Shown here: positions 1 through 25,076 of the stretch, in pieces
Numbering within the stretch: position 1 is the first letter of the stretch
Layout: every line of letters starts with the position of its first letter
Assembly (NCBI GenBank): GCA_002794465.1
Contig: MTSL01000050.1
Coordinates: 113,194-140,511 of the forward strand
DNA from: Paramicrosporidium saccamoebae KSL3
Lineage: Eukaryota; Fungi; Cryptomycota
Length of the DNA: 27,318 nucleotides
Reading direction: 5' to 3'
Notes under the pieces: generated by a model
Database searches by the model: none
Told to the model about the DNA's origin: nothing
The model's input: only the letters and a program-made list of their open reading frames with translations
Position numbers and translations under genes: made by a program

Positions 1-1
1 G

Positions 2-1132: not shown

Positions 1133-1428
1133 TGTCGCGTAGTGGGGATAATACAATACTACGGACTTTGTCAAGCGGGAAGAGAACCCGCTCATTTTTA
1201 ATCCAATGGCCCTTTTATAGTCTCCCGAGTTGCATAATAATAATCCTCAAATGGTAAGATATAGATCTCATTATCCTTCGTCGATTATTCTGATTATCCC
1301 TTCTCCAAACTAGAGAACTATTTCCAAAAGACATACTAATCAGTCTTCTACGTCACAGACCTACTCACAATATTAGTTTTAGATATAGCAAGCACCGTTG
1401 ATGGCAGCTAAACTATAACCACTAACAG
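1133..1428 (+). repeat. Dispersed intergenic repeat family, copy C (degenerate, about 296 bp)
   Basis: Begins TGTCGCGTAGTGGGGATAA, identical to 5527-5545. Then, in the same order as other copies: GTCA-GCGGGAA, TCCTCAAAT, ACTAATCA..TCTACGTCACA (1335-1357), AGCACCGT (1391-1398) and CACTAACAG (1420-1428). Confidence 0.7.
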
Positions 1429-1494
1429 TATTACAAACACTACCAAAACTACTACTAATACTTGTTATTTACATTCAACTATGCCTAGAAACAA

Positions 1495-2166
1495 TCACAA
1501 TCGCGGAGCATGCGGCACCAGACAGCTTCCACCGCCGAGTAGAGGCGGAGATAGCCTTCTCTCGCCTGCTCTCGCCACAGCCGTGCTAGCTGTACCAATT
1601 TCTCCCCCAAGACCTGCAGCCATCGGCTGGCACTTGTGCCAACACTGCATACTCTTGCCTGTAGCTCGTAAAGACCTACTACTAATCAATGAGACACCAA
1701 TAGACTCACTGGGTGCTCGTGAATGCCATCCCACCGGCAGATCGGGTCCGACCAGACGAATGGGACGCACCTTCAAGCTTGAATGCACAATTACTAAACT
1801 CCTTACCGGCTGCAGCAGCGGAATAGGGGGCTTTGGTGTGGCAACGGGACACGACAGTGGGTCATGTGGTTGGTAGACAATCTTGGTGGGGACGTCTCGC
1901 ACGCATACTGCAGTCTGATATACAATGGTAGTGGAGAGAATCCGATGAATAGCTGCAGCCAGTACAATAGCCATTAAACATGCCGATACAGCCATAAAGG
2001 ACATTGTCATACCACCATCGGCCGTCTGTCGTTCATCGTCATCCTCGTCGTGATGTGGGAGGGTAGGGTAAATGATGAGAGGCGGGATTGGATGTTTCGT
2101 CTGTACAATGAGAAATTCATCGTCGCTCTCCAGAACGGGCGAGTCGCAATCCATTGTCATATTCAT
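1495..2166 (-). CDS. Orphan hypothetical protein with an acidic N-terminus and one predicted transmembrane helix
   Basis: 223-aa ATG-initiated ORF, with a hydrophobic segment MSFMAVSACLMAIVLAAAIHRILSTTIVY. No family recognised. Confidence 0.5.
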   Translation of the reverse strand: MNMTMDCDSPVLESDDEFLIVQTKHPIPPLIIYPTLPHHDEDDDERQTADGGMTMSFMAVSACLMAIVLAAAIHRILSTTIVYQTAVCVRDVPTKIVYQPHDPLSCPVATPKPPIPLLQPVRSLVIVHSSLKVRPIRLVGPDLPVGWHSRAPSESIGVSLISSRSLRATGKSMQCWHKCQPMAAGLGGEIGTASTAVARAGERRLSPPLLGGGSCLVPHAPRL

Positions 2167-2469
2167 CTGCAGTCACCCCTATTTATACTCTCCAGCCAGT
2201 CAGAGCCGAATAGGCTCGAGCCCATTGACCAATCAGCCGTTGAGTGGGTTTATATACTAAATTTCGTAGTGGAGACCTCTAAAGACTCTGATCCGTGCAA
2301 AGTTTGTGTTTATAGGTAGTAAAGACGGGGTCTTGATTTGGCGAGGATGTACATGCACATATATTCTATAATATATACACCTTGAACCCACACCACACCA
2401 CCCTCAACCCCACTCTTGCATTCCCATATATCACAATTTATAGATTATCGACTACAGCAGAGTGGATGA

Positions 2470-3383
2470 TTACCAGTCAAAGTCAGTGTTGGAGCGAGAG
2501 AAGCAGAAATCAGAGCCATTGACGTGGATGATCCCCGCCCGAAGCACTCCGCGCCATCGGGTACGCACGCGACCAATCTTTTCGTACTGACATAAAATAA
2601 GATCAGCAATGTTTTCGTCGTCCACTTCGCCGTCCAACTCGTCCTCGTCATCCAGGTCAGAACCCAATTCGTCGACTGGCTCGACAGCAGTGGTGACAGC
2701 AGAGGGGATGGATGCAGGAATTTCACTCCTGGGCCGTTTGGCATTTGAACCAGTCTCCTCCTCGCCGTCGTCGTCAGCATTGTCGTTGCCATCCTTTTCA
2801 CTGTCGCCTCCGTCATATTGTGGGAGCGTGACTACACAATCAGTAGGACCAAAAGGTCTACAGTCGAAATGTATGTCCATTGCGCCGTCATATTGGGGAA
2901 TGTTGTCATTCTGCACAGTCTCCACCTCATCGGTGGCAGGCTGCATCGGTTTGTTCACTGTTCGAATGGTTGTTGTCAGTTGGCCCGTTGCGGTTGGAAG
3001 CTGCACCGTGGCTGACATTATCGGTCTTGGCGGCGCATAGTACGGTACCGGTGTCGAGTAGGTGGCGGGGAAGCCGGGTCGCGCTACTCCAGGTGTCGGG
3101 TAGAAGAACCCTGCCGTCTGGGAGTAGTCGCGCGTCGCCGTAATGGGAAAGTCCTGTGGGCTGAAGACGCGCGATTCAATGAGCTTTTGCTCCCACAGCT
3201 ACACATTAACAATACCCCACCTGCGTACCGTTTGGAGGTCCACTAGCACCTGCTCATCCACTCCCATATTTACAAAATCCGTCCGCACCGTCTTAATGAC
3301 TTCCTCAATGACATTTTTGTATAATTGGGCCTACACCTATTATTCATTTCAGGGCTGCCTACCACATCTCCAGAGTTGGACAT
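2470..3383 (-). CDS. TOA1: Transcription initiation factor TFIIA large subunit (alpha/beta), 3 exons
   Basis: Spliced model: exons 3383-3363, 3330-3229 and 3198-2470, GT-AG introns 3331-3362 (32 nt) and 3199-3228 (30 nt). N-terminus MSNSGDVAQLYKNVIEEVIKTVRTDFVNMGVDEQVLVDLQTLWEQKL, acidic linker, and C-terminus LILCQYEKIGRVRTRWRGVLRAGIIHVNGSDFCFSRSNTDFDW are typical of Toa1. Confidence 0.93.
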
Positions 3384-3440
3384 GCCAAACCAGGGATGAG
3401 GGGGAGGATGGAGATTCCCAGAGAGTTTGTAGTTGTAAAG

Positions 3441-3534
3441 AGTGTGTAATGAGTAGTATGTAATGAGTGGTGTGTAGTGAGTAGTGTGTAGTGAGTAGTG
3501 TGTAGTGAGTAGTGTGTAATGAGTAATGTGTAAT
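3441..3534. repeat. 14-bp minisatellite, consensus GAGTAGTGTGTA(G/A)T, about 6.5 copies
   Basis: Units at 3451, 3465, 3479, 3493, 3507 and 3521 (three consecutive units nearly identical), plus a partial unit at 3441-3450. Confidence 0.95.
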
Positions 3535-3615
3535 TAGTATTTGAAATCTCATAGACCATTCATTCTTATACTATAGCCTCACAAATCCCCTCTTTATTAC
3601 ATTCTCACTACAGGG

Positions 3616-5293
3616 CTAGTTGTTGCCAAGACGGCGCATTATGTCTTCAATGGCAAACTCAATGGCACAACGCATCTCAATTTGGCTGTGCCGCTTCCAT
3701 GTTGCAACCTCGCCCTTTTGTATGCAGTATCGGACAAATTTTGGATCGGGATTGGACAGCAAATATTGGATATCCGAGCAGTAGATGGTCGGTGTGATTT
3801 GGACATCACCCACCATGGGAGCCTTGAAAAAGTTGAGAATATTCAAAATTATTTGGGGAACAAGTCCCAGTTCCTTCATCTGTCTGAACCGATGTGACAC
3901 TTCTGTAGTTGCCAGATTTGAAAGAGTCCACAAAAACGATCCGCGGTACTGTTCTGAGCGAAGAGGCCGCCACGTCAAATACGACGGCACTTGGGAGACG
4001 ATAAAGTTGTTGGCGTTGAAAAGCTCAGTTAGACGCTTCACCGGCATCTCTTGAACCATCCGGGCTGACTCTAGCTTTACCGCCGAAGGATGCCAAGGAT
4101 AGATTGTCCCGTCTTCCTTTTTGGACAAAAGCATGACTTCTTCATAAATGCCTGGTGTGGCGAGCGAGGCACATGCTGCCGTCCAGATGACAAGATCAGG
4201 TGCTGTCATGTAGTTCAGCAAAACTGGAACTTCGTGCTTTCTCTTGGCGTATACGGTAATGTTGAGGATCAGCCCTGATTTTTGGTATGCCTCCCTAAAG
4301 GTGACATCTCCGATGTTGTGCCTCGCACACTCTTCCATTACGCGAATGTCAAAGAGACGTCCATGTTTCAAGAAGCGGGTCAACTTTCGTTTAAAGCTGC
4401 CTTGGGCTCCATTTCTGTAAAAGGCGTCGAATTTGATAGTTTCGCCGCTAAATATTTCACTCAGCTTTGATGCGTCCTGCACACAGATGAGCGATGCAAC
4501 CAGAGCCCCAACATACGAACCACAGATTATCCGCGGCATTAAATTGCGCTCGTGGAGGGCCTTGACAACACCCAAATGACACATACCAAACGAAGCGCCG
4601 CCGTGGAGGATGAGCACCGTCCGGCCGAATGTCTGCAGCAGTTCGGAAAAGAACTCTCTTTTAGAAATGGGGTCGATGGAGGGGTCTTTGCTGTCGGCGA
4701 TTCTGTTTAGACCATGCACCACTTCATGAACGTACTCTTCAATCAGCGCCTTGGTTCCCGCAAACGAGTGTCTGTACAAGTCGGGATTTCCAATCCCGCC
4801 TAGATTTCGCAAATGTCCTAAACACATTACAACACTGGCAATCCAATACCGGCCCGAATAAAAAACATTGTGGAGGCAATGTCGTCCTCTGCGTTGAAGC
4901 CACGGAGGTGGTCGAGACGTACAGATATCATTTTGTGATCATATCCCTTTCCCTTTGGAATAGTCCTCCACCTTTCATTCCCTAAGTATTTGGTAAACTG
5001 TTCAAGTAGTCTTACCGGTGACCCTACAAAGTCAAATAACATGCGTTGTTACCGGTCAAGTTCCGCTGCAAGCATTTTCCATTGTTCATAGGACTCGGCC
5101 CTAGCCATCTGTCTTCTCAAAACATCCGCGTGACTTTGGCACGGATACATGATCGTGTTCAGGGACACCTGCGCTCAACAGACAGTTCAGCGGCTGTACC
5201 TGAATCCATTGGACCAGTGTGCTGGCAACCCGAAAGCTCTTTTCTAGCAAAAAGGCCTACTATCAGCTAGTCTGATCAATCGAGTACAATCAT
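3616..5293 (-). CDS. Patatin-domain triacylglycerol lipase family protein (TGL3/4/5-SDP1 type, with DUF3336-like N-terminus); catalytic motif degenerate; 6 exons, about 506 aa
   Basis: Exons 5293-5288, 5256-5200, 5168-5053, 5023-5016, 4981-4850 and 4817-3616, with introns of 31, 31, 29, 34 and 32 nt, all phase-consistent. Motifs: ESYEQWKMLAAELD, HLRNLGGIGNPDLY, FGRTVLILHGGASFGMCHLGVVKAL, LLNYMTAPDLVIWTA, LTELFNANNFIVSQ. Confidence 0.9.
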
Positions 5294-5526
5294 GGACAAC
5301 AGCCAGCCTCCTGCGGACCCGTGTTTCCGCTTAGGCTCAGCCTGCAACTTAAACTCCCGACCCAAATCGGTTAAGTAAAATTAATATTTTTGGGGTTTGT
5401 AGTAACTATTCTGATAAACAGCACCTGCTTCTGATTTGTAATCCAATGTGCTGAAGTTGGTAGTCTGTAGCGGTTAATAGCGAGATGTTCTCGTGCACTG
5501 AAAAAATTTGTTAAACCGCATCCGCT

Positions 5527-5832
5527 TGTCGCGTAGTGGGGATAAATAGTATGGACTGTCAGGCGGGAAAGGGGGGATTTGTTCACTGCTAATCCTAGAA
5601 TAGTATGCACACACATCTCACTGTCCTCAAACACTCGGCTAATCGATCCACTCTATCACACAAGTATATCTTCACATCTCCAAATGCCCACCTAATCAAC
5701 CCTCTACGTCAAACGCTTATGATTGGCGACCTTGACTCAGATACTTTTGCTATCCCACAATCCCGTGTTGGGGGTAGTAATCTGTAATGGCGTCATTTAG
5801 TAACTACATACGCTTGCTCTCTAACAGGGCCC
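5527..5832 (+). repeat. Dispersed intergenic repeat family, copy A (about 306 bp)
   Basis: Six colinear blocks shared with the inverted copy at 13322-13519: TGTYGCGTAGYGGGGATAAATAGTATGGA; TTRTTCACTGCTAATCCTAGAATAGTA; TGCACA..TYTCACTGTCCTCAAA; CTAATCAACCCTCT..CTACGTCA; AATGGCGTC.TTTA; CGCT..CT.CTAAYAG.GCCC. Confidence 0.9.
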
Positions 5833-5929
5833 CTTCGTCTGGATTTAGATAGCGTCGGACGGCCAGTCTACTTTAAGATAATGTGCATTGATTATGTCAA
5901 GACACCCCTCATTGTCAATCCCCGGCCCA

Positions 5930-6436
5930 ATGGACAACTCCATCCATCCGAACAAAAGAAACTTTATAGAGGGCCTGCATATCATTTTTGATCGCTGGGT
6001 TGCCTTCCGGATGGCACTGGATATGGAATGGGGCGGCCACGATACCTCGGACAAGGCACAGCAATTCAAAGAGGGGCTGGTGGACTATTTCGATCGAGGT
6101 AGGACGGTTCTGGTTGTTTTATGTTGAAGAGGGAAAGAATATTGAGCCGGAAGATATCGAAGACATTCTGCTTGATGTCATGTGTAGCGAGTTTTGCACA
6201 GTTCTTGAGGACGGCAGCGAAATAGAGGTTCATCTAGGGTATCCGAGTGCTCATTAGTTGTAGGTGGCAAAGTCTATCTGGGCGCTTTACCAAGAATCTG
6301 TAAAGGGAAATACAGCATTGCTAGAATCTCTGCGGCAGCGTGCTGGGAAGGCTTTGAACTTGAATGTTGTGAAACCATCAAACGAGGAATCCTCGTCAGA
6401 AGAGTATAGTGAAGATGACGACCCGATGGACGAGTG
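5930..6436 (+). CDS. TSR2: Pre-rRNA-processing protein TSR2 (Rps26 escortin), 3 exons
   Basis: FIEGLHIIFDRWVAFRMALDMEWGG (WGG motif) and IEDILLDVMCSEFCTVLEDGSEIE|VAKSI, with an acidic tail. Introns 6099-6129 (31 nt, AAG acceptor) and 6228-6263 (36 nt). An alternative in-frame ATG lies at 5894. Confidence 0.88.
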
Positions 6437-6657
6437 ATTCATAGATCAATAATTATTTAGATGAATGTATTATTTTTCCTTTGGTTGACCAGGTGAATAA
6501 GCTTTTCTTGACGCCCTGCGCATTCTAGGCCGAGCGAGCGGCCACTAAACTCCCCGCCCTTTATTGAAAGCTTTAATGTCCATCATATAAGCATCATACT
6601 TGTGTCGTGGCTAAAATACAAAACCAGCATTTTTCCTTTCTTTGGCACATCACTAAG

Positions 6658-9072
6658 ATGCCTTTTCGGCGTGTCGCCACCCTTTCGTCAACATCTACCA
6701 ACTTTTCCGAATTCCTAAGCACCTGGAAGTCGGTTACAGATGCGGAGTATGAGACTCACAAGGAAGCCTTTTCCTCTTGCATGGAGCATGGAGAATTGCC
6801 TGTTACTCAAATTATCCAGAATTATTTTGAACGTATCCGGACAGAGTATTCACGACGTGATCGTTATGAAAATAAAGGCGAGTTTATGAAGGTGCTCGTT
6901 CTGGGGAGCAGAATAAAGGCGCTGTATGGACGCCTAGTGCAGGACAATGTTGCCAAAGTGTCACATACTGTACTTTGCTGGATGAATGAAGAACTTCAGA
7001 CTCACATTTCGGCGTGGACGAGCGATCTCAAATTGCGTGTTTGTCCGAGACCTGCTTGCTACGGTCAGTTGGTGAAAGTCTCCATAATGTTGGACATTAC
7101 TCGCGACTGGGTTGCCTCTTTTCCTCTACAGCTTCGCGTGGCTAACTCGAACGGAACAATTTTTTTTGCACTTGGGTAGCAGCACAGGTTTGCCTTACGT
7201 TTTAGGTATTACGGAATCTTTTTATTGGACCAAATTATTGATAGCACAATTAGTTCTGTTAGTCGATTGCACGATCGCTTCTTGCTAAGGGGTGATCGGG
7301 GTCTCTTTATGCGGGATCTACGAAAACTAGTTACCGTGCTCAATTTCCGTTTCCAAACCTATGGGCGATGCATGCAGGTTATGAAACGCAGCGTAGCACT
7401 ATGCAGCGATCTAAAGGCTTTTTCGGAAGAGTCACTTCAAAAATTTCTGGTGCACTTGAAAAATTGTGGCAAGTTTATGATCGAGTACGAGGATGAGGAT
7501 GTTGTAGAGTTCTTGTCCACTTCTTTGCAGGATCCAGAAAGACGAAGAATATTCGACGAGGCCATTAGTGACTTTTCATTTGCCCTCACCGATGACTTTA
7601 GGATCAGAGTCTATCAGGGCGGAACTAGACACGGTGACATTTATGTTGAAAGTCGGCATTCGTGGGTCAAGGACAAGTGGGTTTCTGAGGTGTCTCATTC
7701 GTTTGGTCTGCAGATTACCAACTCGGGCTACTCGCCCATGCCAAAATTGAATTTATGGATGATGAATGTTCGATCTCGGCTAGAGATGATTTCGCTTTCT
7801 TCCTTTTGGGTTACTAACATTCTCGAAGACGGGGGATTTTTGACCGTGGATCCCGCGACAAACATAATGATGCACTACCTTGCCTGTGTGCACAGTGCCG
7901 AAATTCTTATAAATCCGATAAGCCTGTTGGTAGCGTCAACTGGAATGCTTTGGACTGTCACCATGGCAAAGATGGGGAGCTGGTTGTGTACGATGGAAAA
8001 ACTAATCGGAACAGAGTGGTTGACTCAACCGTGGAAAAAGCTGACTTTTTGCATGAACCTTATCAGCCAGTTGATCAGAAGGTGTCCTAAAAGCATGCGC
8101 TTGCATGGCCTTGTCAATGCCATGACAGACATAGTCAATTTATTGCAAGATGACGCCGATCTTAAAACTATTGACAAAGAAAACAAAGACATTAATGAAA
8201 AAATGATCCTCAAAGAGATGACAGTCAAATGTATTGACGAGGCTGTCCATTTAGAGTCGAAAAAGGTTGAAACTTGCGGGCCAGCAGAGGTTAAATACCT
8301 TTATCGTCTGGGCGGGGGATCATTTGGCCAGGTGTATCGCTGCTACGATCCTGTGCTGAATTGCGCCATTGCCTTAAAGGTCGTCACCGTCCCTGCTGCA
8401 GACGCCGTATCTGGCCAGCATCTGGCTTCTGAAATTGGTCACTTGAAGTACATTAACCATCGGAACATTACTCGTCTTCATGACTATGTTGTTCAGGGCA
8501 ACACGACCTATCTCAAGATGGAGCTCTGCGATGGCGGTTCTCTCCAGGACCTGATTAAACCTGGTAATCATGTTGACTTGCGACTGTTCCGGGGCGTTGC
8601 GCATCAGATCCTTCTGGGATTGTCCTTTCTCCATGCCAACCAAATCGTCCATGGCGATATGAAGCCAGCCAATATCCTTTGCGACTCTTTTGGCGCAATC
8701 AAGTTGGCCGACTTTGGAACATCACACTGTCTCATAAACAGCGCCCGGAACGAGACTACCGGCACCTTTCTATACACGGCGCCTGAAGTCTTGGTGGGAG
8801 GGGCAGCCTTGCCACATTCAGATCTCTGGTCAGTAGGATGCACTCTTTTCCATCTGGCTACTGGAATTCCTCCCTGGGCCGACTGTAGAACCTCGTGGCA
8901 AGTCATGCTAAAGGCCTCTCAGAAACAATGCTTCGACTTGACCCCGCTCCATCAATGTCCCTTGCCGCAAGAAGCAAAGGACATTATTTTGGCGTGTCTA
9001 GAGGTAGAGCCAGCATCTAGACCCTATGTTCCAGAACTCCTGGTCACCAAATATTTTTTTGATCCCGAATAG
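6658..9072 (+). CDS. Ser/Thr kinase of STE11/MAP3K type (SSK2/Wis4/MEKK4-like), non-RD, about 794 aa; paralog 1
   Basis: C-terminal kinase domain GGGSFGQVY, AIALK, MELCDGGSL, HGDMKPANIL, DFG, GTFLYTAPE, SDLWSVGC. The two ORF-track pieces (6607-7179 and 7225-9072) are in the same frame and are joined by a 30-nt GT-AG intron at 7176-7205 that removes the TAG. Confidence 0.85.
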
Positions 9073-9385
9073 CAAACCAATGTATATAGTAAACTGTGTC
9101 CGCTATTAACTACATAGCGGTATTCTAAAAGTTGGTTTATCTTGTCCCGCAAATTTCCTTTACAAGTCGCGCTTAAGGGATGATAATTTGTATTTAGAGC
9201 ATGATCAAATAAAAGAGTTCACCTTATGGAAGGAGCTCTACTACTCACAGACACAGCTACTGCTTAGGGCGTGCAATAGTAGCCCTTGTACGTAGGCTAA
9301 AGAGTCCTTGCACCATACAAGCCCATTCTTTTCAGCCTGGCGATTCATCAATTTCACTCGCCACTCGGGGAAACCGGGGGTATAT

Positions 9386-11668
9386 ATGAGCTCGTCCTCT
9401 TTGGCGCTGATTGAAAACTGGGGCATCTTTTTCAATGAAAACTCGGACAAGACTGCTCTTGAAAAGCTTTCCATCCAATCAGTACAAACTAGTATTCACG
9501 AACTGTTCGGTATCATTGAACAAGAGTCGTGGGACTTTTATGATGAACAGCAACAACTGATTAATGCGTTCATAGCCACTGCACGGCTCCGCAATCTGCT
9601 AATCCTATATGGTCTTGAACTATCCACTTCAGCTATTAGAAACATCGACATGCGAATCCGCTCCATGTTTGCCGTTTGGACTGCCAGTTTGCAGAAGAAG
9701 ATGATTCCCCGCCCCGCCAATTTGGGCGATTTTCCCTGCTTCTCTGGGCTACTTGCATACTTTAATAATTTTGTCCGGTCTTTTTCCATTTCCAGCAGTG
9801 TCCGAGGGACGGAGTCTATGCTATTACTGGGTTGTGGAACTAACACGCTGGGACTGGTCGATCAGATCGGCGACTTTCTAATCGTAGCCATTAGCCATGC
9901 ACACGACCATTTCTTACTGAACGGAAATAGAGAAAGACTGATGGAAGAGTATAAAAACATCATGTTCAAGACGATGGGGAGATTGAGGCGACATGTGGGA
10001 TGTGCTCGGGTATTGCGTCAGTTGGCATCCATCTCCTCGCTACTAAATGCTCCTGATCAGGTTGCATTGCAAGAATTCACAGATTACCTAATTGTCACTG
10101 GCAAATTTACTCGAACATTGCAAGATGATGGGTCTGTGCAGTTTGTGTCAAACTCTCTAATCAGAGATACTGCCAAATATGCACTTTTCAAGTATTCTAC
10201 AGTGGATCGATCATCAACCTTTTTTGATGAATTCCGCATCACTGTCGACACTACCAAGCTGGCAGTCACAGTCGAAGGACGCAATTCGTGGGCCAAGGAC
10301 CGCTGGGTCTCTGAGATTACTTCCAAATTCCGCCTCTCCATCGTCCGTGCGCAAATGGCCTCTGTGGCCACGCTGAACCAATGGATGGGTGATGTGCAGC
10401 ACCGATTAGAGACTATTGTTCTCATTATGATGTGGGGAGTTCATCTTGTTAGGAGGGAAAGCTTGCTGGAATTGGACCCGACCTTTGTCTTAACGTGCTA
10501 CTATTACTGTTGTTCGTTTGCCCTGGATACTTTGGAGACTGCTGATGGTGCCATTTCGTGTATCACAAAAGATTTGTGGCGTGCGACTGGAAGAAAGATT
10601 TGTTCTTGGATCGCTGCATCGGCGTCGTTTTGGCATTCTGAATCGCCCAAACTTGCCATGGAAAACACTCTGCTAGCCCTGAATCATCTGGCGCGATATA
10701 TGCACGTCTGTCCTAATAACAATCTTATCCCGTTCAACAGCCTTTGCTCATCATTGCAGAGGCTTCAGGCCGTTGTTCTATCCCCAGCGGCAGCCACTCA
10801 GAGTAGCGAGCTTCTTGCCCACTTTCTTGACTGTTGTCTTGAACGTTGCCGTAGCAATTGCAGCAATTTCGTGTCACCCATAAAAAATACAAAAGGCACT
10901 GGAATCAAGTTCCCCACCATTATTGGTGGCGGCACATATGGCATTGTTTACAAGTGCTTTGATCTCAAACTCAATTCCGCCATTGCCCTTAAAGAAATTC
11001 GTCTCTCTAAAGCCAATGGTAATCTTGCTGAAGAGGTATGCTATCTCAAGTTTCTCAAACACTGCAACATTGTGGCCTTCCTGGACGCAGTCACTACAGA
11101 TGAGGCAGTGTATCTCAAGACGGAACTCTGCCAAGGCGGATCGCTTCTTGATCTTATTACTGCCGGCCCACCTCCTGACTCTCTAAGCTTTAGAAGGATC
11201 ATGGTCCAAATACTGTTGGGATTGACGTTTCTACACGGGAACAACATTATTCACGGCGACTTGAAGCCGGGAAACATTTTGCTAGATCGATTTGGAGTGG
11301 TCAAGCTGGCAGATTTTGGGACGTCGCATTGCCTTGCAAAGGACAGACAGGCATTTCCGATGGGCACGCTCCCTTACATGGCGCCAGAAGTCATATTGGG
11401 CGGCCAAGCCACCCATAGTTCAGACATTTGGTCCCTAGGATGTACGCTCTTCCAATTGGCCACTGGGCTTGCACCTTATGCGGAATGCGAAGGGCTTTGC
11501 CAGACCCTGCTGACCATTTCCCAAGGAAGGTTATTTGATCTGGCTCCGCTTTACAAAGCCCCACTAGAACCATGGATTCAGCAACTGATCTGTTCCTGTC
11601 TCTCCTTTAATCCAATCGAACGGCCGCTGACCACCATCCTGTTGCTCAACAATAACCTTTATGGATAA
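9386..11668 (+). CDS. Ser/Thr kinase of STE11/MAP3K type (SSK2/Wis4/MEKK4-like), non-RD, about 760 aa; paralog 2, intronless
   Basis: IGGGTYGIVY, AIALKEI, TELCQGGSL, HGDLKPGNIL, DFG, GTLPYMAPE, SDIWSLGC. The N-terminal region aligns with paralog 1 (WTASLQKKMIPRPA vs WTSDLKLRVCPRPA; NSWAKDRWVSEI vs HSWVKDKWVSEV). First true ATG is at 9386. Confidence 0.88.
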   Translation: MSSSSLALIENWGIFFNENSDKTALEKLSIQSVQTSIHELFGIIEQESWDFYDEQQQLINAFIATARLRNLLILYGLELSTSAIRNIDMRIRSMFAVWTASLQKKMIPRPANLGDFPCFSGLLAYFNNFVRSFSISSSVRGTESMLLLGCGTNTLGLVDQIGDFLIVAISHAHDHFLLNGNRERLMEEYKNIMFKTMGRLRRHVGCARVLRQLASISSLLNAPDQVALQEFTDYLIVTGKFTRTLQDDGSVQFVSNSLIRDTAKYALFKYSTVDRSSTFFDEFRITVDTTKLAVTVEGRNSWAKDRWVSEITSKFRLSIVRAQMASVATLNQWMGDVQHRLETIVLIMMWGVHLVRRESLLELDPTFVLTCYYYCCSFALDTLETADGAISCITKDLWRATGRKICSWIAASASFWHSESPKLAMENTLLALNHLARYMHVCPNNNLIPFNSLCSSLQRLQAVVLSPAAATQSSELLAHFLDCCLERCRSNCSNFVSPIKNTKGTGIKFPTIIGGGTYGIVYKCFDLKLNSAIALKEIRLSKANGNLAEEVCYLKFLKHCNIVAFLDAVTTDEAVYLKTELCQGGSLLDLITAGPPPDSLSFRRIMVQILLGLTFLHGNNIIHGDLKPGNILLDRFGVVKLADFGTSHCLAKDRQAFPMGTLPYMAPEVILGGQATHSSDIWSLGCTLFQLATGLAPYAECEGLCQTLLTISQGRLFDLAPLYKAPLEPWIQQLICSCLSFNPIERPLTTILLLNNNLYG

Positions 11669-13306: not shown

Positions 13307-13321
13307 GCGCGAATGGATGTT

Positions 13322-13519
13322 GGGCCTATTAGTGAGCGAAAATTTTTATTAAAGACGCCATTGTAGACTATCGCTCACGGTGCTATTGTGACGTAGAGGC
13401 AGAGGGTTGATTAGTTGCTGGGTATTTGAGGACAGTGAAATGTGCATCCCTACTATTCTAGGATTAGCAGTGAATAAACCCTCCTTCCCGTCCATACTAT
13501 TTATCCCCGCTACGCAACA
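13322..13519 (-). repeat. Dispersed intergenic repeat family, copy B (198 bp, internally shorter than A and C)
   Basis: The reverse complement reads TGTTGCGTAGCGGGGATAAATAGTATGGA...TTATTCACTGCTAATCCTAGAATAGTA...TGCACATTTCACTGTCCTCAAA...CTAATCAACCCTCT...CTACGTCACA...AATGGCGTCTTTAATAAAA...CTCACTAATAGGCCC, colinear with 5527-5832. Confidence 0.9.
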
Positions 13520-13644
13520 CTATGTATACTGAGTGGTGGATCAAAGACGTCAAGAGTAATTAGAGACAAGAAACGGCAGAGACAGGTAATGGCAGAGGTG
13601 AGAAAATAAAAGACTGACGTTCCAATCTATCTATGTTTTAGCAT

Positions 13645-13661
13645 CTTCCCCGCTACGCGAT
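13645..13661 (-). repeat. Dispersed repeat family, isolated 5' block (fragment E)
   Basis: The reverse complement contains TCGCGTAGCGGGGA, matching the start block of copies A, B and C; same strand as B and about 130 bp from it. Confidence 0.5.
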
Positions 13662-13743
13662 ATGATATATGATATGCTGTCGCACATAAATGAAATTGTT
13701 TTCCATCTGTCCTTAAAGGGCAAATATTTACGCGTCGACAACC

Positions 13744-15423
13744 ATGCGGTGTCTGAGTGTCCTTGTGCTGGCCAGCACTGCCTCTCTCGCCTCCAGCCTC
13801 GAATTTGTTGCTGTTCCATCTTTTGTCAGTTTGGCTGATGAGTAGTATACGGACAATGGCCCGCCAGCCTGTGGACCTGTTTTTGCACCGGGATTCTGGG
13901 TTCCTGGGCGTGTGCCTGCGTCTGTAGATTGTACCATAAGGGATTTGTCTTACCGGTAGTGAAATTACAGCTTATGGATGCCTCACCTGACACGCCATTT
14001 GGCTATGTCATCTACAATTACGATGATGAGGAATCTATCGGCTACAAGCTGCCTGGCGAGGTTTGTGTCGGTTACATCTAAGGTTATAGAGCACCAAAAT
14101 GCTATTCTGCTCAACCGCAACGATTGGAAAAGGGCCGTGCACCAAAGAAAAGGTGGGACAGCTCATGACTGATGAGAAGCGACCCCCCAAACACCAACTC
14201 CGCAAAGACTGGATCGACTCTTCAAGCGGGAATGCCTTCACCACCAAGACCTCCTTTCCCGTCAAGGAGACTGGATATTATTGCCTCCGAATTGCCAACC
14301 CGAATGCAGGCTCATTGGATGTCAAGCTGAATTTTATCAATCCATATGGAAAGATGCCGCCAGAGTTTTTCCCCCTACTCAAGGTCTCCATGTTTTTATT
14401 CGTGACGTACGCGATGGGATTGTTGGCATGGATTGTATTGTCGGTGAAGCATAGGAAACATTTGGTTTCTCTACAGAATTACATTGGAATTGTCATTGGA
14501 CTGTCATTGATTGAGATGGGAGTGATCCATGCCTTTTACTATCACTTTAACGAGACTGGCGCTCCTTGTAAAATCCTGGTGCGATCGCTAATGTCTAGCC
14601 AATACAATGATGCTGCTCACTTCGGTTTTCAGTGCAGTCAGGGCTACTGCAGCGCTATTCTTCCTTCTTCTAGTCAGCATGGGCTATGGTGTTGTCATGT
14701 ATGCCGATGCCCCATGGCTAATGATGTAGGGCTACTCTGGGTGACAAGTCCAAATCTGTCTATGCCTTGACATTGGCTCATCTCGGATTCTCCGTCTTGA
14801 ATGCGCTGGCTGGGGTTTCTATTCGGAATCAAAAAAGCCTTTTAATTCTGTTGGCTTCTGTGCCCATTTCTGTAACATACACCATCTTTTTTTCCTGGAT
14901 CCTCAATGGACTGTCGGCCACCAAGGAAAGTTTGACGGTACGTAAGCAGAGTGCCAAGCTTGGGATGTATGAACAGCTGACTTGGGTTCTCTTTGGATTC
15001 TTTGGTGCGGCCTGTTTCTTTATGATTGGCGCCGTCTTTGTGATTATCACTTATAACAACAGTCAATCCTGGTATGCCTCTCACTGGAACTGGCTCTGGT
15101 TCTTTTCTGCGGGCTGGCCAATGTTTCTCAACTGTCTCGCCTGCATGGCCGTTGGCTGGATCTTCCGTCCGCAGGCATACAACCGCAGCTACGGGATGAA
15201 TGAAATATCCGAGTTTCCCCTTGACGAGGAGGATCTCGATAACCGTGCAAACATGGCCCTTGATACATTGCGAGCGCATCGCCGTGGCACTGAGGAGTAT
15301 GGAAATCTTAGCGGAAGCATGGATGAGCTCGAAGGACATTCCCGATGGAACACGGGAAGCTTGCAAGCATTTGGTAACGATGATGACTCGGGAAGTGAGG
15401 AGCACGTACTGTCAAAGAAATAA
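13744..15423 (+). CDS. PTM1: PTM1/TMEM87/GPR107-family (LUSTR, GOLD-domain seven-transmembrane) protein, about 6 exons
   Basis: Signal peptide MRCLSVLVLASTASLA; lumenal VIYNYDDEESIG and FPVKETGYYC; NPYGKMPPEFFPLLK; HRKHLVSLQNYI; LLLVSMGYGVV; IFFSWILNGLSAT...KLGMYEQL; WIFRP. Introns at about 13813-13845 (donor ambiguous), 13931-13959, 14061-14089, 14568-14598 and 14699-14729. Confidence 0.85.
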
Positions 15424-15450
15424 TCCATTAAATATTTGTTTTCAACATCC

Positions 15451-15765
15451 ATGCGCATGATTATATCTGCGGCGCGACATTTCCTACAAAGACCAGCACT
15501 AGTCCTTTTTAGGAATGCATCAGGTCTTTTACGACCCACCCTACAGAGTGCATCAAGCCTTTTTCAACCTATCATGCAAAATACATTCAAGTTCCCAATG
15601 CACCTAATACCCCTCCGCACCTTCAAGATAAAATCCAGCGTTCGTCTCCGCTGTCCCCAATGCTACTTTGCACGACGGCAGGGCACACTGTTTGTGCGGT
15701 GCAAGTTGCATCCGCGCCACAAACAGCGTCAGGGCCGAGCCACGCGTAAGCAGCAGGTCTTTTAA
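15451..15765 (+). CDS. RTC6: Mitochondrial ribosomal protein bL36m with an N-terminal presequence
   Basis: FKIKSSVRLRCPQCYFARRQGTLFVRCKLHPRHKQRQG is the L36 signature with intact C-x2-C...C...H zinc ligands. The leader is Arg/Ser/Leu-rich and lacks acidic residues. Confidence 0.9.
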   Translation: MRMIISAARHFLQRPALVLFRNASGLLRPTLQSASSLFQPIMQNTFKFPMHLIPLRTFKIKSSVRLRCPQCYFARRQGTLFVRCKLHPRHKQRQGRATRKQQVF

Positions 15766-18449: not shown

Positions 18450-18623
18450 CTAAGAATAAATGTGTTATTATGTGGAGTTTTAACACACTTGACTGGTTCT
18501 TGGTTGAAAATGGCTCAACCTCTTTGATATCATTCAGGGACACTCGCCTTTTTAGTCAGAGTGTCACTATGCGATGATTGCATCCATATTTTAATAGGGG
18601 CCGAAAATAAAGAACTAATTTCC

Positions 18624-21419
18624 ATGGAGCGTTTTATGGCACATTCGGCGGGACATTGCCGTCTTCGAGCCCTCCCGAACGAGTAGCGTCTTTTCTAAAT
18701 TAACATTCTAGCTGCTTCCTGACGGGCGGAAGCGATGGTGAGCTTGCACTTCACCACCTCGATGAATCTTGCAAACTAAGCACAACTGTTCATCGACGAA
18801 TTCACCGTGGCGCCATCACGGACATTTCTGCCACGGATGCGCATTTTATCAGTGTCGGCGAGGATGGTGCCCTGTATGTCACTAGTCACAACGTGCTGGA
18901 AAGCAAACTGACATTTCGAGCGACCTTGCCGCTGCAGACGGTGGCAGTGGACGTTTTGATAGCGGTAGCAGGAGATGAATTGACCATTTCAGTGGTTGAT
19001 TTTGAAGCAAATGTGGTTTGGAAGAGCGAGATCCTCGCCTCTGTGGTAGTGGGATTAGCATGGTGCAATTCTTCTTTGGTATTTTTGTTGTGGAATTAAC
19101 ATTGGCGTAGATTAGCGTGGATGCAAAGGGATTGGTGTCAGTTTGGAAACCGGCTGATGGAGGATATGCAAAGAGTCGCAGTGTGAATATTGGAGTTTCG
19201 CTGAGTAAGTATACCCAAGTCTTTATCAACAGCAAATGGATCATCCTGTGTTGTCCAGATAGTAATACTTTGTCACTACCTATTTACATATTGTAGATGG
19301 ATTATTTATACTCGAAAAGGACGAGCTAAAGATGAAGGAACACATTAAGCCACCCACAGCTGCACATTTTTCTGCAGCCGTGATCCCAGTGCCTGGGACT
19401 GAAGTTGTTGTTCTAGCGCATTCCGAGGGAGCCACTCTAATCAGTAGCGATTCTCTGGAGCTCTCCCCCGATCTACCTATGCCAGTTGCCAATGTCATTG
19501 GAGTTGCTGGAAATGCCCTTGGCAATATGCTCACAATCAGCAGTGATGGTAGCCTTGCTCCATTTTCAGTGACTTTTGCATTTGATGATGCACCCAAGTC
19601 TAAAAAGAGTTCCTTTGACATGTTTGACTCTGACGCCGAGGCAGAGGAGAGGGAGGACGAAGACAAGATTCTTAAACGGGATCGTAAATATATGATGGAC
19701 AGTGAGGAAGAATTTGACGACTACGATGTGGAAGATCCCACCGATCAGCCGGAGCCCGCTATTATTCCACCCTCTACTATGCAGTATCGTCCAGAGTGCA
19801 TCCATAAGCAATTTCAGCCATCATGCACCCCTTTTGTTCATGGGTATCGTTTCCTGTGCTGGAACAATACCGGAATAATCACATCACGTCAAGATGAGGG
19901 GTATTGTAGTGTTGCTGTCGAGTTTCACGACAAAAATTTCCATCGACCAGTTCACTTTATTGACGAGTTTGGCTACACGATGGGCGCCATTGGCAAATCT
20001 GGCTTCATCTTGGCATCTCCCAAGGACGCAGAGAGGCCGTCTATGTTATATATTTCTCCACTTGATTCTCAGGAACGGTCAGCACCATGGTCCATCTCAC
20101 TGGCGCCAGAAGAAGATGCCTTGGGCGTGGCAATTGGTGCTGCTAAATATGCAGTGGTTGCTACCAGTGCAGGATTCTTGCGAACCTTTAGCCCAACGGG
20201 TCTGCAGGGACCGATTGTCAATTTCCCGGGGAGCTTTGTCTCCATGGTCGCCCATGCAAACCAACTATTTGTCCTGACATCTGACGAATTCAGCAGCGAA
20301 TTGGTGTACACATTTTATAGCCTCGATAAGCTTGCACAGCTACGCACGGGTCATGTTGGAGGACGGTTCCGCAATCTAAGACTCGGCTGGATAGGATGGA
20401 GTGATAGCGGTATTGCCGGAATTTTCGACGAACAGATGGTACTTCATATCTGCAATGCGGATGCCGGATATGTCTGGCAGCCATGGTTGGAATGTCGAGA
20501 GCACAAGGAAAAGAAAGAATTAGTTTGGCCAATCGGCTTTACGGCCAACGACCTTTTATGTTTGCAGCTGAGGAGCGGAGACGAACATCCCGAGCCAGTC
20601 CCCCGGCCCATGCCGACGGTGATCCCCATGCAGATTCCGCTCCTGGCCATTGATGATCCAACCGTTGTATCCTTTGAAAGGGCCTTTAGAGCTCATACAA
20701 TCTTCAACTCTGGCTCTTTGCGACCCGAGCTGGCGGATCGAGAGTCTCGAAGGCTACAGTTGGCATCGGACAAACATGTACTTGAGCTGATTCAGCTGGC
20801 AATTCGAGCGGATAAACCGGCCAGAGTTATCGAGTTGTGTCCGTTGTTCTTGATGGAAAAGTCTTGGGATATGGCCATACAATTGGTCAGACACAACAGG
20901 CTTGCGCAGCTAGCCGACCGTATCGAAAACTTGCGCAACAAGACTGAATGCAAGACGGAGGTGCCTTGTGAAACAAGAGTAAGGCCAGCTTTGGTGAAAA
21001 CTCCGAAGGCACTGAGCCAGGTTGCTATAGAGTCCCCGAGCACTACTCTAGCCAACTTGACACCAATCCCATTCAGTCTGGAAGCTACACAATTGAAGCC
21101 TGATGTTCCATTATTTCCCTTGAGTCATTCTGCATTCGATGAATCCACCCAGCTCCCTCCCGAAATGCCCATCGAGCCTGCCCTCGAGACACCCGCGGCA
21201 CTCGCCAATCCATTCGCTCAACTCTCATTTGACACTCCGCGCACAGAGGCAAAGTCGCGCAGCTTTGCAGAAATGATGCGCACAGTCCAGCAGGCTGTCG
21301 AGGCGCCTTCACCCATAAAGAAAGCCAGGTCTGAAGCTCCCGCAGAAAAGACCAAGAGGCAGTCGGAATTGTCGCTCTTTTCAAAGTGCGTGGATGAGAA
21401 CACTGCAGGCAATGAATAA
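18624..21419 (+). CDS. CTF4: Replisome adaptor Ctf4/Mcl1/AND-1 (N-terminal WD40 plus SepB-like domain), 4 exons
   Basis: The 5' exons are missed by the ORF track: MERFMAHSAGHC...D|CFLTGGSDG...TLPLQTVAVDVLIAVAGDELTISVV. Introns 18683-18711 (29 nt), 19079-19110 (32 nt) and 19262-19296 (35 nt; an alternative in-phase donor lies at 19205). Core HKQFQPSCTP..RFLCWNNTGII..VEFHD..HF.D..GYTM and GFLRTFSPTGLQ. Confidence 0.9.
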
Positions 21420-21782
21420 ACGGCCATTATGTGCACCAAAGTTTCAATTTATCAATGAGCGCATATTACTGTACTACTTTAGCTACTTTTTAGAAACTTC
21501 CGAGGTATTACCAAAGCCTTACAACTGTGACTCGAGTGTTCAACGTAAAGTAGTCACGCTCCACGCTCAGCAGCAATAATCAAAAAACATCTTTGAGTGA
21601 GCATAGACGGATTGTGCTATAAATTTCAATAACTTTGACATTTCTGGAATTAATTTAATTTAGTGCACCCAATTAGTGTCTCATCGATGGCCGTTCAATC
21701 GATTTCGGGGATACCCCCTCTGATTGGACAACCGCCACTTTATTGCAATCTGGCAATCTCACATATTCCCCAAGGTAGCAAT

Positions 21783-21790
21783 TATAAAAA
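21783..21790 (+). promoter_or_regulatory. TATA box (TATAAAAA) upstream of the small secreted protein gene
   Basis: Consensus TATA ending about 30 nt before the ATG at 21822. Confidence 0.5.
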
Positions 21791-21821
21791 GGAGCGCTGT
21801 CGTTTAAGCACCCTGTCGGCA

Positions 21822-22139
21822 ATGCAGCTTCCTATTCTTGCTCTTCTCGTCGTTTCTGTAGTGGCAAGCAGATTTTCAGAACAAGAAATAAGAGCATTCA
21901 GGACCAACACCATGACGGATTCGGAGGATGATATATATGAAAATGCTTACAGGGGAGCAAACAGATATGCAACACTATCCACCGCGCCAATGGGCAATAC
22001 ATATGGTTCTTTTTTGCTTTGTGATTAACCTGCATGAATAGGTGGTGGATATGGTGCCGTACCCGGAGCACACGAGGCGGCAGCTAAGGAAGCAGCAAGG
22101 GCCGTTTTGGAGCACCGTGCAAACAAAGCAGGAAAGTAG
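21822..22139 (+). CDS. Small secreted orphan protein, 93 aa, 2 exons
   Basis: Signal peptide MQLPILALLVVSVVA. A 36-nt intron at 22006-22041 (GT...TTAAC...TAG) removes the stop and gives ...NTYG|GGYGAVPGAHEAAAKEAARAVLEHRANKAGK*. An upstream TATA is present. Confidence 0.7.
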
Positions 22140-22238
22140 AATATTCATTAGTGTCTCAATCACATAAACGTAGCAATTCATGCATGCAATGTATTGCACT
22201 CTGCAGCTCATTGTGCTGGTTCAAGTATCCAAAATGCT

Positions 22239-23219
22239 TTATTCATCGGGTTCTACTTCTACCTCTTTCCAGACTTTGATGGACTTGTCACCCTCCCCAG
22301 TTAGCAGGCGAAGTCCAGTCCTGTCGAACGTGGATGCGTATATGGCTGCCTCACAATCCAGTGAGCCAGGCTGTGGGATGGAATCCAGTTTTTGGAAGCA
22401 CTCGCCCGAGCCCCAATCCCAAAAGCGCAGCGATCCATTGTCGCCGCCACTGACAAGGACATTATCATGGTTCACTGAGACTGTGTTAATGACTGTGTCA
22501 TGTCCATCAAAGTCGTTTAAAAACGTTCCTTCGGGCAGTTTCCATTTTTTCAAATGGTCAGTGGCACCCGACACAAAAGTATATTCAGTTGGGTGTCCAG
22601 CCAATGTCCGCACACTCCGTTTGTGATGTGTCAGCACGGCCATTGTCTTCCCCGCCACCACATCCCACAGTCTAATAGTTGCATCCATCCCTGCCGTCAC
22701 AATTTGCGGCTTGCACTCGTTGGTAAGGACGGCTGACACAGTCTGCTTGTGTCCGCCCAGCACGTGAATTGCCTGTCTCGTCCGCAAATCCCATACTCGG
22801 GCTGTTGCATCCCTTCCTGCTGTCACTAGTAGGTCCAGTGTGGGGTGCAGTGCTACTGCATACACGCCGCTCAGATGGCCATGGTAATGTCTGACTACCT
22901 TGTTCTGTTCGAGGTCCCAGCATTTGATCATCTTGTCGTCAGACACTGAAAAGAGGTACGGATGACGGGGACTGACAGCAAGACCGCGCACAGAGCCGAT
23001 ATGGCCTGTGAGGGTGAGCTTGAGGGTCCCAGAGGGGAGGTCCCAGATTTTGATGGTACGGTCAGCCGACCCAGAGGCAAACCACTGGTTGGAGACGTCT
23101 ACTGCTAGAGACCGCACCCAGCCAGTATGGCCAGACTGCACCCGCATTAGTCGCCACTGAGAATGTGGTCTGGCATCCGGTCTTTTCGTCTTTGGCTGTG
23201 TAGTAAGCTGCTGGGACAT
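22239..23219 (-). CDS. PRP46: Pre-mRNA splicing factor Prp46/PLRG1 (WD40)
   Basis: [79 protein letters not shown] and [16 protein letters not shown]. First ATG is at 23219. Confidence 0.96.
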
Positions 23220-23635
23220 GTCTTTGTATACAATAGCTGTCCAGGGTGTCCTATAACGGATATTGTACACCGTCTGTGTGATATGATGACGTAGAGATTC
23301 TTTTATCTACGTGCAGAAACCGAGAGCTGTTTCTGTAGGGTATAATATTATTTATAGAGCAAACCTATGGGGGTAAATTTATGGAGGCGGATTCTTTCCT
23401 CTGATTATGCTCTGAATGGACATTATCATTCCTTAGGTGCGAATTGTTTCACCACGTACCAGTCAGCGCTCCTAAACAGGGAGTCTTTTTACCACCTTTT
23501 CTGGTCCATAAGCTTTGATCCGTATATTATGCATGGTGGATTGGTCAACCACGTGACCCAATGTAAGATGCCGTGTCGTTAACACGCTTCAAAATCATTG
23601 GTCGGTTTGTTTATATACTTCACTAACCAACAACG

Positions 23636-24352
23636 ATGGCTCCCTTTTGTCGCGAGAGCCTCATCTCGCTTATTCGTCCACAGCCTCCGCAGAAAATATC
23701 ACTGGCTCAGACTGTCGAAATGCTAGTGCAATCCAATGAGATTAGCATGGAACCTGTGATATTGGAGGATGCCACCGTGGGAGAGGTGCTGGCTACTCGG
23801 ATTATGAGATCCTCGTTTCCCGAGTTCCCAGTGACTGCTGTTGCATCCAATGATTCTACGGAGAGAATCGACCCGATGGTCCAGCTAACACATGCTGCTG
23901 ATCTCATTACTCAGCATGGCATCTCGGTAGAGGGAATATTTAGACTCACCAAGAGCCTCGAGCGGCCCGAAGAATTAGCTTCGATAATTGCGGCAGGGAC
24001 ACGGGCGGATATGGAGCACGACAGTCCTTATGACCTTGCTTCCATGTTAAAGATTTACACGCGAAAATACTATCCAAACATCCTTTCCGAGTCTGATATA
24101 ACGAGCATCAATGAAACCGGCGATGCCGCCACGTTCCTTTCCACACTTACTGCAGAGCGGCGTCGGTTCCTTGCTCTGCTAGGTGCGCTCTGTCGCACCA
24201 TTGACTCGCATCAGGAGACTAACAAAATGTCCATGTCCAATCTTGCTCGCGTCCTCGCTCCGAACCTTTTCCAACACCCCGACCCAATGGTGGAGATGCG
24301 TCTCATTCTGCCCACTATTGAGGCAGCTAGGATTATCATGAACGTTGCATGA
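23636..24352 (+). CDS. Stand-alone RhoGAP-domain protein
   Basis: HGISVEGIFR (arginine finger intact), PYDLASMLKIYTR and NKMSMSNLARVLAPNLF. Confidence 0.9.
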   Translation: MAPFCRESLISLIRPQPPQKISLAQTVEMLVQSNEISMEPVILEDATVGEVLATRIMRSSFPEFPVTAVASNDSTERIDPMVQLTHAADLITQHGISVEGIFRLTKSLERPEELASIIAAGTRADMEHDSPYDLASMLKIYTRKYYPNILSESDITSINETGDAATFLSTLTAERRRFLALLGALCRTIDSHQETNKMSMSNLARVLAPNLFQHPDPMVEMRLILPTIEAARIIMNVA

Positions 24353-24500
24353 ATAAATAGATTTACTACTTGTCCACCACTACAACGAGAATCCCATGAG
24401 CGTTTCATGAATAAGTAGATTTGCTAGTTGACCACTGCTACAGCGAAAATCTCATGAATAAATAGATTTACTAGTTGTCTACTACTACAGCGAGAATCTC
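24349..24500. repeat. Three tandem 47-bp units at the RhoGAP/HSP10 convergent junction
   Basis: Units 24349-24395, 24407-24453 and 24454-24500, with an 11-nt insert at 24396-24406. Unit 1 vs unit 3 is 42/47 identical; unit 2 vs unit 3 is 41/47. Confidence 0.95.
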
Positions 24501-24776
24501 AGATTCGCGGAGAAGCAACGTGGAATCGTCCGTTTTATCGCCGAGGTTTACGGGTGAGCCACCGTAGGTAGGGAGAATGACGATATCACCAGTTTTGAGA
24601 GTGACCTTGTCCTTGTCGCTCCCAGGCCCGACTGCAAGCACTTCACCGCGGTGCAGGGTCTCCTGAGACCCCTCGGGGATAAGGATTCCAGTGGCGGTTT
24701 TTTTAACTGGTTTGAGCTTTCGTACAAGGATACGGTCCAGCAGCGGGATGATGCGCTTAATGGCTTGGTTGGTCAT
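24471..24776 (-). CDS. HSP10: Mitochondrial co-chaperonin Hsp10 (GroES family)
   Basis: IKRIIPLLDRILV...KTATGILIPE...GEVLAVGPG...GDIVILPTYGG...LLRESEILA. Confidence 0.96.
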   Translation of the reverse strand: MTNQAIKRIIPLLDRILVRKLKPVKKTATGILIPEGSQETLHRGEVLAVGPGSDKDKVTLKTGDIVILPTYGGSPVNLGDKTDDSTLLLRESEILAVVVDN

Positions 24777-24827
24777 GATACGCGATTCAAGGGCTATCCT
24801 GCGAAAATCGCCAAGCCCCTTTTTAAG

Positions 24828-24844
24828 GATTTTTCGCGAAAATC
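24828..24844. promoter_or_regulatory. Possible heat-shock element / palindrome upstream of HSP10
   Basis: Perfect palindrome TTTTCGCGAAAA (24831-24842) containing TTCnnGAA, preceded by an imperfect third unit (GAT), about 55 nt upstream of the HSP10 ATG. Confidence 0.35.
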
Positions 24845-24879
24845 TGACTTGCCCTGACCAATCACCGAGTCTTTATTAT

Positions 24880-25076
24880 TGTCGTGTAGTGTAGAGGAGC
24901 CGTCACCATGCACAACGTCAGGTGGTAAGAGACGAAGAAATGCGAAAAAAGCGAAAAGAAAACTTGTTCACTGCTAATCCAACGGACCAAGTCATAAGGA
25001 ACCATTAATTGTCATTCGCGGTTAATCCAACGATCCATTTATAGAATACCCAGATGAGCAATCCACTATATCACAC
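24880..25076 (+). repeat. Dispersed intergenic repeat family, copy D (degenerate, 3'-truncated at the neighbouring stop codon)
   Basis: TGTCGTGTAGTG (24880), then TTGTTCACTGCTAATCC (24964-24980, 17/17 with copy A), ATACCCAG (shared with B) and ATCCACTATATCACAC (15/16 with A), in colinear order. Confidence 0.7.

Follow-up and report, generated by a model that had tools for sequence, protein, structure and literature searches.

The window analysed here comprises the terminal 27,318 bases (27.3 kb) of contig MTSL01000050.1 (140,511 bp; assembly GCA_002794465.1) from the genome of Paramicrosporidium saccamoebae, a rozellid that parasitises amoebae. It contains four copies (A to D) of a short dispersed repeat, which lie in intergenic gaps between convergent (A), divergent (B) and tandem (C and D) gene pairs. 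This arrangement, noted in a preliminary description of the window, is borne out by the NCBI gene models, from which the gene positions and intergenic gaps given below are taken. Together the four copies occupy 741 bp (2.7% of the window, or 12% of its intergenic DNA), and three of the four widest gaps between its genes are due to them; the twelve gaps that hold no copy measure 21–416 bp, with the exception of one of 819 bp. The genome paper (accession MTSL00000000) reports a gene space of 76% and a repeat content of 0.53%, mostly simple repeats, and leaves transposons unmentioned (PMC5701793). We describe evidence that the copies are insertions belonging, with little room for doubt, to a family of mobile elements of some kind.

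The family is readily distinguished from chance similarity. Its 18-nt head, TGTCGCGTAGTGGGGATA, sought with up to three mismatches, occurs three times in the window and four times in a segment upstream on the same contig (L003), against a shuffle expectation of 0.00–0.02; for the window, dinucleotide-preserving shuffles give an expectation of 0.00. Pairwise alignment of copies B and C gave E 1e-22 over ∼125 nt, while in A and B the heads aligned at E 3e-6 and a second, collinear segment at E 1.6e-4. Copy D by itself was marginal in pairwise searches. When nhmmer profiles were built by leaving out one copy at a time, the withheld copy was recovered in each case (A, 9e-13; B, 1e-25; C, 8e-17; D, 6e-4; E, 8e-9; G, 1e-19), the close relative F having been withheld together with A. 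Copy D is a divergent but true member of the family. Head counts, alignments and profiles thus confirm the four copies at the starts and on the strands given in the preliminary description. The near-identical blocks of 27–29 nt described there for A and B are shorter, the best being 22 nt (19 matches) and 19 nt (16 matches), and copy B contains neither the AATAAA reported near its 3′ end nor ATTAAA.

Further copies were sought in another 38 kb of the same genome, comprising 17 kb upstream on the contig (L003 and L005) and 20.8 kb of MTSL01000003.1 (L004). Three were found (E, F and G), making seven copies in ∼65 kb of the 7.3-Mb genome, on two contigs (Table 1); this sample is a biased one, the window having been picked because copies occur in it. 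The copies range in length from 133 to 234 bp and fall into the subfamilies A/F, B, C/G, D and E, with identities of 90% for A/F, 88% for B/C over aligned columns and 84% for C/G.

Table 1. Copies of the repeat, target-site duplications (TSDs) flanking copies in the window, and a head-like fragment. Positions are those of the window unless a segment is named.
Feature	Position	Strand	Description
Copy A	1133–1357	+	225 bp, TGTCGCG...CGTCACA; within 902-bp gap of convergent gene pair
Copy B	5527–5713	+	187 bp, TGTCGCG...CGTCAAA; 998-bp gap between divergent patatin-like and TSR2-like (WGG) genes
Copy C	13387–13519	−	133 bp; 667-bp gap between two tandem + strand genes, antisense to both
Copy D	24880–25075	+	196 bp, most diverged; 299-bp gap of tandem gene pair; nhmmer match covers first 110 nt
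Copy E	L003 2380–2569	−	profile E 8e-9
Copy F	L003 5684–5917		234-bp insertion
Copy G	L004 19352–19485 (contig MTSL01000003.1)		profile E 1e-19
Left TSD of A	1129–1132		GACC, identical to right
Right TSD of A	1358–1361		GACC
Left TSD of B	5523–5526		CGCT
Right TSD of B	5714–5717		CGCT
TSD of C	13383–13386		CTAT on + strand, ATAG in element orientation
TSD of C, other side	13520–13523		CTAT on + strand
Head-like fragment TATCGCGTAGCGGGGA	13645–13661	−	possible remnant of older copy; nhmmer E only 3–5, not established

The position of the 3′ end is central to what follows. It had been placed near a CTAA(C/T)AG motif; that stretch is not repeated among the copies, and we find instead that the element ends in the block CTCTACGTCACA, which repeats the head TGTCGCGTAG imperfectly in inverted orientation. 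This relationship was recognised because folding of copies C and G paired GCGTAG of the head with CTACGT. The 3′ limits of A, B, C and D are corrected accordingly to 1357, 5713, 13387 and 25075, respectively. Beyond CTCTACGTCACA the copies are no more alike than shuffled sequences, except for a modest similarity between B and C (Smith–Waterman z 6.1), and BLAST of the flanks that follow the tail found no repeats. The B–C likeness lies outside the TSDs, at 5780–5835 and 13322–13365, and takes the form AATGGCGTC.TTTA.TAA ... CTAAYAGGSCC; it was equalled in 1 of 300 shuffles and did not recur elsewhere.

With the ends set in this way, the termini of the copies are closely similar. All seven begin with TG and six with TGT, G beginning TGA; six of the seven end in ACA, B ending in AAA. 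Both ends fit TGTNR, with G as the exception at the head and B at the tail. Comparison of the first 16 nt with the reverse complement of the last 16 shows agreement at 7–10 positions in every copy and none beyond; the terminal symmetry ceases after ∼14 nt and the interior is asymmetric. The four bases on either side of the corrected ends are identical in four of the seven copies (GACC for A, CGCT for B, ATAG for C and CATG for F), and agree at three of four positions in D (TTAT/CTAT) and G (AAAT/GAAT). Shifting the right boundary by 1 to 4 bases either way (eight offsets) gave a perfect flank match in no copy. The chance of obtaining at least four perfect 4-bp matches among seven copies is estimated as ∼8e-9, for a boundary that was picked after the sequences had been inspected and was applied to all copies by a single rule. 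The preliminary description had proposed, as the first of three options, that the copies are solo long terminal repeats (LTRs) or relics of non-autonomous transposons, while recording as an objection that no TSD could be found. Because the 3′ boundary moves to CTACGTCACA, 4-bp TSDs appear, the objection falls, and the option gains their support.

Insertion is demonstrated by copy F. When the spacer carrying F was aligned with two paralogous spacers that lack it, homology extended to ...GGTC CATG, was broken for 234 bp, and resumed at CATG GAATCG; at the corresponding site the two empty spacers have CATG or GATG just once. F inserted cleanly, adding its 234 bp and a second CATG, and its empty site is preserved in the paralogues. 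The spacers concerned belong to an array of genes for putative secreted proteins (PSACC_00583–00586). The tandem array extends over L003 1470–9956 and window positions 1–592 and includes at least five paralogous genes, encoding proteins of ∼312 amino acids with a signal-peptide-like N-terminus and no Pfam domain; a sixth member, PSACC_00010, sits on another contig. The first two annotated genes of the window (one ending at 137, the other at 182–592) look like a member of this family that has been broken in two. Although 90% identical, A and F lie in unrelated flanks and have different TSDs; because flanks and TSDs differ, we regard them as separate transposition events rather than as products of segmental duplication.

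Relatives provide a second comparison. Four Logan assemblies, SRR14578328 (L006), SRR28640822 (L007), SRR28204432 (L019) and SRR24693327 (L020), contain contigs syntenic with the window, spanning Cpn10, PRP46, Ctf4, a WD-repeat gene and GOST. With PRP46 identities of 71–83% and G+C contents of 48–57%, their sources appear to be undescribed relatives of Paramicrosporidium. In SRR28204432, the ortholog of the 623-amino-acid gene next to copy D is followed by a 157-bp spacer free of the element and then by Cpn10. The same spacer in P. saccamoebae measures 299 bp, of which D and one TSD copy make up 200 bp. In ∼57 kb from the four assemblies, mostly syntenic loci, there was no member of the family, and there were no dispersed repeats of the relatives' own. 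The head 18-mer gave nine matches in JGI metagenome contigs and two in bacterial genomes, none longer than ∼24 nt and all attributable to chance.

Within the copies, conserved blocks occur in fixed order and orientation: the head, GTCAGGCGG, TTCACTGCTAATCC, ATCTCACT, CTAATCA and the tail CTACGTCACA. The head, of 18–19 nt, is nearly invariant. A TAATCC block is duplicated inside A and D, an internal duplication seen in D as the block TAATCCAACG. Internal duplication of the TAATCC type resembles the enhancer repeats in the U3 regions of LTRs, a resemblance that is weak evidence. A fragment of a further copy had been proposed at 13645–13661. A 16-nt head-like match does lie there, 142 nt from the head of C and on the same strand, and as a family member it is marginal. 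The stretch 13520–13661, directly 5′ of C, contains besides this 16-mer a 16-nt tandem repeat (13562–13597) and CTCTGCC motifs resembling ones close to the C and G tails; C may have landed here in an older copy that has since decayed.

The combination of TG...CA termini fitting TGTNR with a short inverted terminal repeat and a TSD of 4 bp is, at the level of sequence, the signature of a retroviral-type integrase. We consider that the copies are probably solo LTRs of a Ty3/Gypsy-type LTR retrotransposon, solo LTRs being the usual transposon relic of compact fungal genomes. An integrase would have attached the element by its TG...CA ends at a 4-bp staggered cut in intergenic DNA, and the 4-bp duplication would have arisen when the cut was repaired; this integration step is the one that the sequence records. 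Recombination between the two LTRs of each insertion would later have removed the internal gag-pol region, leaving one LTR between the duplications. The conserved blocks would then be the parts that an LTR lineage must keep, namely the ends recognised by integrase (5′ TGTCGCGTAG and 3′ CTACGTCACA) together with promoter- or enhancer-like signals in the interior, the repeated TAATCC being one example, while the spacers between them would vary since the copies stem from the diverged subfamilies A/F, B, C/G, D and E.

Solo LTRs of known Ty3/Gypsy elements, such as Ty3 sigma in Saccharomyces cerevisiae and Tf in Schizosaccharomyces pombe, resemble the copies in their TG...CA or TGTNR ends and short imperfect inverted terminal repeat, in a short TSD of fixed length and variable sequence, in their asymmetric interior and diverged subfamilies, and in being scattered singly through the intergenic DNA of a compact, fungal-type genome. 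They differ in the length of the TSD, which is 4 bp here, in association with tRNA genes, which is lacking here (ARAGORN found no tRNA gene in the window), and in having a full-length partner, of which the ∼65 kb sampled contained none. Terminal-repeat retrotransposons in miniature (TRIMs) have LTR-like repeats of 100–250 bp, with TG...CA ends and short TSDs. The copies share with them the very short LTR-like repeat and both of these features; in contrast, a TRIM consists of two direct repeats around a short interior with a primer-binding site and a polypurine tract, whereas only single copies were found here.

Several observations weigh against the solo-LTR interpretation. The ∼65 kb of P. 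saccamoebae DNA contained no full-length element, with two LTRs, gag-pol, a primer-binding site and a polypurine tract, although full-length repeats may be lost or collapsed when short metagenomic reads are assembled. No reverse transcriptase or integrase domain (Pfam) was detected in the scanned hypothetical and unannotated open reading frames (ORFs) beside the copies, nor was there one among the Pfam matches listed for the called genes of these loci. A length of 133–234 bp is very short, at the low end for LTRs; yeast LTRs measure roughly 250–370 bp. Fungal Ty3-type elements usually give a 5-bp rather than a 4-bp TSD, and copy E, flanked by TGCT and AAGG (0/4), has no TSD. Finally, the genome paper, with its 0.53% of repeats, reports no transposons (PMC5701793).

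TGTNR ends are common to Gypsy LTRs and to Ginger DNA transposons (PMC2836005), and it is possible, if on balance unlikely, that the copies are miniature non-autonomous (MITE-like) derivatives of a cut-and-paste DNA transposon with an integrase-related transposase, of the Ginger/Tdd-like or IS3/IS481-like kind. A transposase of this kind recognises TGTNR ends and likewise leaves duplications of 4 bp, and the likeness to Ginger1, Ginger2/Tdd and their non-autonomous derivatives extends to both features (Bao, Kapitonov and Jurka, 2010; PMC2836005). The shortness of the element, its terminal inverted repeat of ∼10–14 bp, the presence of short copies only in the DNA sampled, and the lack of retroelement genes in the scanned hypothetical and unannotated ORFs are all consistent with this origin. 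Nevertheless, the terminal inverted repeats of Ginger elements are 40–270 bp long (PMC2836005), whereas here symmetry ends at ∼14 nt and the remainder, with its ordered blocks, lacks symmetry; no gene for a transposase was seen. Ginger1 targets CCGG or CCGT and Ginger2 an RTATAY context (PMC2836005), preferences that are not apparent in GACC, CGCT, ATAG and CATG, although only seven sites are known. Moreover, the copies represent diverged subfamilies rather than a single homogeneous burst, and the sole Ginger found in fungi is a vestige in Malassezia (PMC2836005). A solo LTR fits better than a Ginger-derived miniature because the symmetry ends at ∼14 nt, the interior is asymmetric and the targets are GACC, CGCT, ATAG and CATG.

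All readings other than these two are, even taken together, improbable, and we do not expect a host RNA gene or regulatory module because of the TSDs, the empty paralogous site and the absence of the family from relatives. The preliminary description had suggested a multi-copy non-coding RNA. A family of structured RNA genes, or of tRNA-derived short interspersed elements (SINEs) transcribed by RNA polymerase III, with the head as A box and TAATCC as a degenerate B box, would account for the fixed order and orientation of the blocks, and TCGCGTAGTGG in the head agrees at 10 of 11 positions with TRGCNNAGTGG, which we take to be the A-box consensus. This idea is nevertheless very improbable. There was no relevant Rfam match, whether for the window at gathering thresholds or for copy B at E up to 10; ARAGORN detected no tRNA-like gene in the window; and folding energies equalled those of shuffled sequences (z, +0.08 for B, −0.37 for C and +0.60 for G). 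The sole recurring helix, of GCGTAG in the head with CTACGT, was considered as an RNA structure and proved to be the terminal inverted repeat. The copies end in CTACGTCACA, lacking a consistent T-run terminator as well as any A-rich or simple-repeat tail, and SINE insertion mediated by long interspersed elements does not yield a fixed 4-bp TSD together with TG...CA ends. The mostly syntenic 57 kb from relatives held no copies, an observation that bears also on the origin or insulator proposed as the remaining option. Selection on a host cis-regulatory module (origin, insulator or shared promoter) in many intergenic regions could be read from the block-wise conservation, with its nearly invariant head of 18–19 nt, and from the proximity of copies to gene ends, D abutting a stop codon and lying ∼100 bp from the Cpn10 start and B lying 217 bp upstream of the TSR2-like gene. 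We give this little credence: the TSDs, together with the demonstrable empty site of one copy, show that the copies arrived by insertion, they keep no consistent position or orientation with respect to the genes around them (convergent, divergent and tandem), and the conserved motif upstream of Cpn10 is not part of D and also occurs in relatives without the element. Divergence among subfamilies of a mobile element, with selection acting on its ends and internal signals for as long as it transposed, accounts better for the block-wise conservation.

Two further identities were rejected. Coding sequence is excluded by stops in all three forward frames of the head and by indels between copies whose lengths are not divisible by three, such as the 1-nt indel between C and G. 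A spliceosomal intron or introner of the form GTAGTG...CTAACAG is contradicted by the position of CTAACAG outside the TSD-bounded element, in flanks that are not significantly similar, and by the location of all copies between annotated genes, not within a transcribed gene.

Returning to solo LTRs, the copies could derive from an LTR lineage miniaturised to an unusual degree, with LTRs as short as 133 bp, and still or recently mobile in one of the most compact fungal-type genomes, some copies possibly having been adopted as gene-end signals. We hold this to be unlikely. Continuing or recent mobility is suggested because A and F are 90% identical at different sites.

The 3′ end of D directly abuts the stop codon (25076–25078) of the 623-amino-acid gene, whose TAG stop, on the minus strand, is held within the CTAT flank. 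Because D inserted exactly at the stop codon, the 3′ untranslated region of this gene now runs into D. At its other end, D begins ∼100 bp upstream of the Cpn10 start and 12 bp past a motif at 24828–24867. This motif, GATTTTTCGCGAAAATCTGAC...CCAATCACCG, is 77% conserved in SRR28640822 (L007, 23–62), and a similar GATCAGATTTTCGGGAAAAATCC is found in SRR28204432; the motif is probably the Cpn10 core promoter. Copy B, 217 bp upstream of the TSR2-like gene, is situated in a divergent promoter region. Single copies may later have been co-opted by the host.

Several other features of the window were noted. The 819-bp gap (21420–22238), between the Ctf4-like and PRP46-like genes, contains no copy of the element and no annotated gene; its longest ORF, 21663–22028, encodes 121 amino acids and has no Pfam match. 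The adjoining PRP46/PLRG1-like protein is encoded at 22239–23219 on the minus strand, and its sequence is identical to that of a protein recorded for MTSL01000050.1 at NCBI. At 3441–3539, a 14-nt tandem repeat, AGTGTGTAATGAGT, with ∼7 copies and a 7-nt sub-period, takes up a large part of the 232 bp that separate the TFIIA-like gene from the patatin-like gene. A second tandem repeat, at 24337–24501, has two to three copies of 47–58 nt that are 81–90% alike, each unit having ATGAATAAATAG, which includes AATAAA; it begins within the final codons of the RhoGAP gene, whose stop lies at 24352, and continues into the convergent Cpn10 gene at the latter's 3′ end (24471). Two tandem paralogous protein kinase genes, at 7309–9072 and 9386–11668, encode long N-terminal regions without a Pfam domain and have in common a 49-nt stretch of 78% identity.

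The window thus reveals an unannotated transposon family in a genome that has been described as nearly repeat-free, a family of an ordinary kind that annotation had missed. The practical gains are modest, and no new kind of biology is involved: a consensus will be useful for repeat-masking and annotating the assembly, and the copies can serve as presence/absence markers between strains. If the miniaturised LTR lineage considered above were real, the figure of 0.53% repeats would understate the mobile DNA of P. saccamoebae, and the family would show how transposons can persist under extreme genome compaction. More generally, the copies indicate that this reduced genome has been invaded by mobile elements more than once, and they offer a starting point for tracing the retrotransposon or transposon that is, or once was, at work in Rozellomycota near the root of the Microsporidia.

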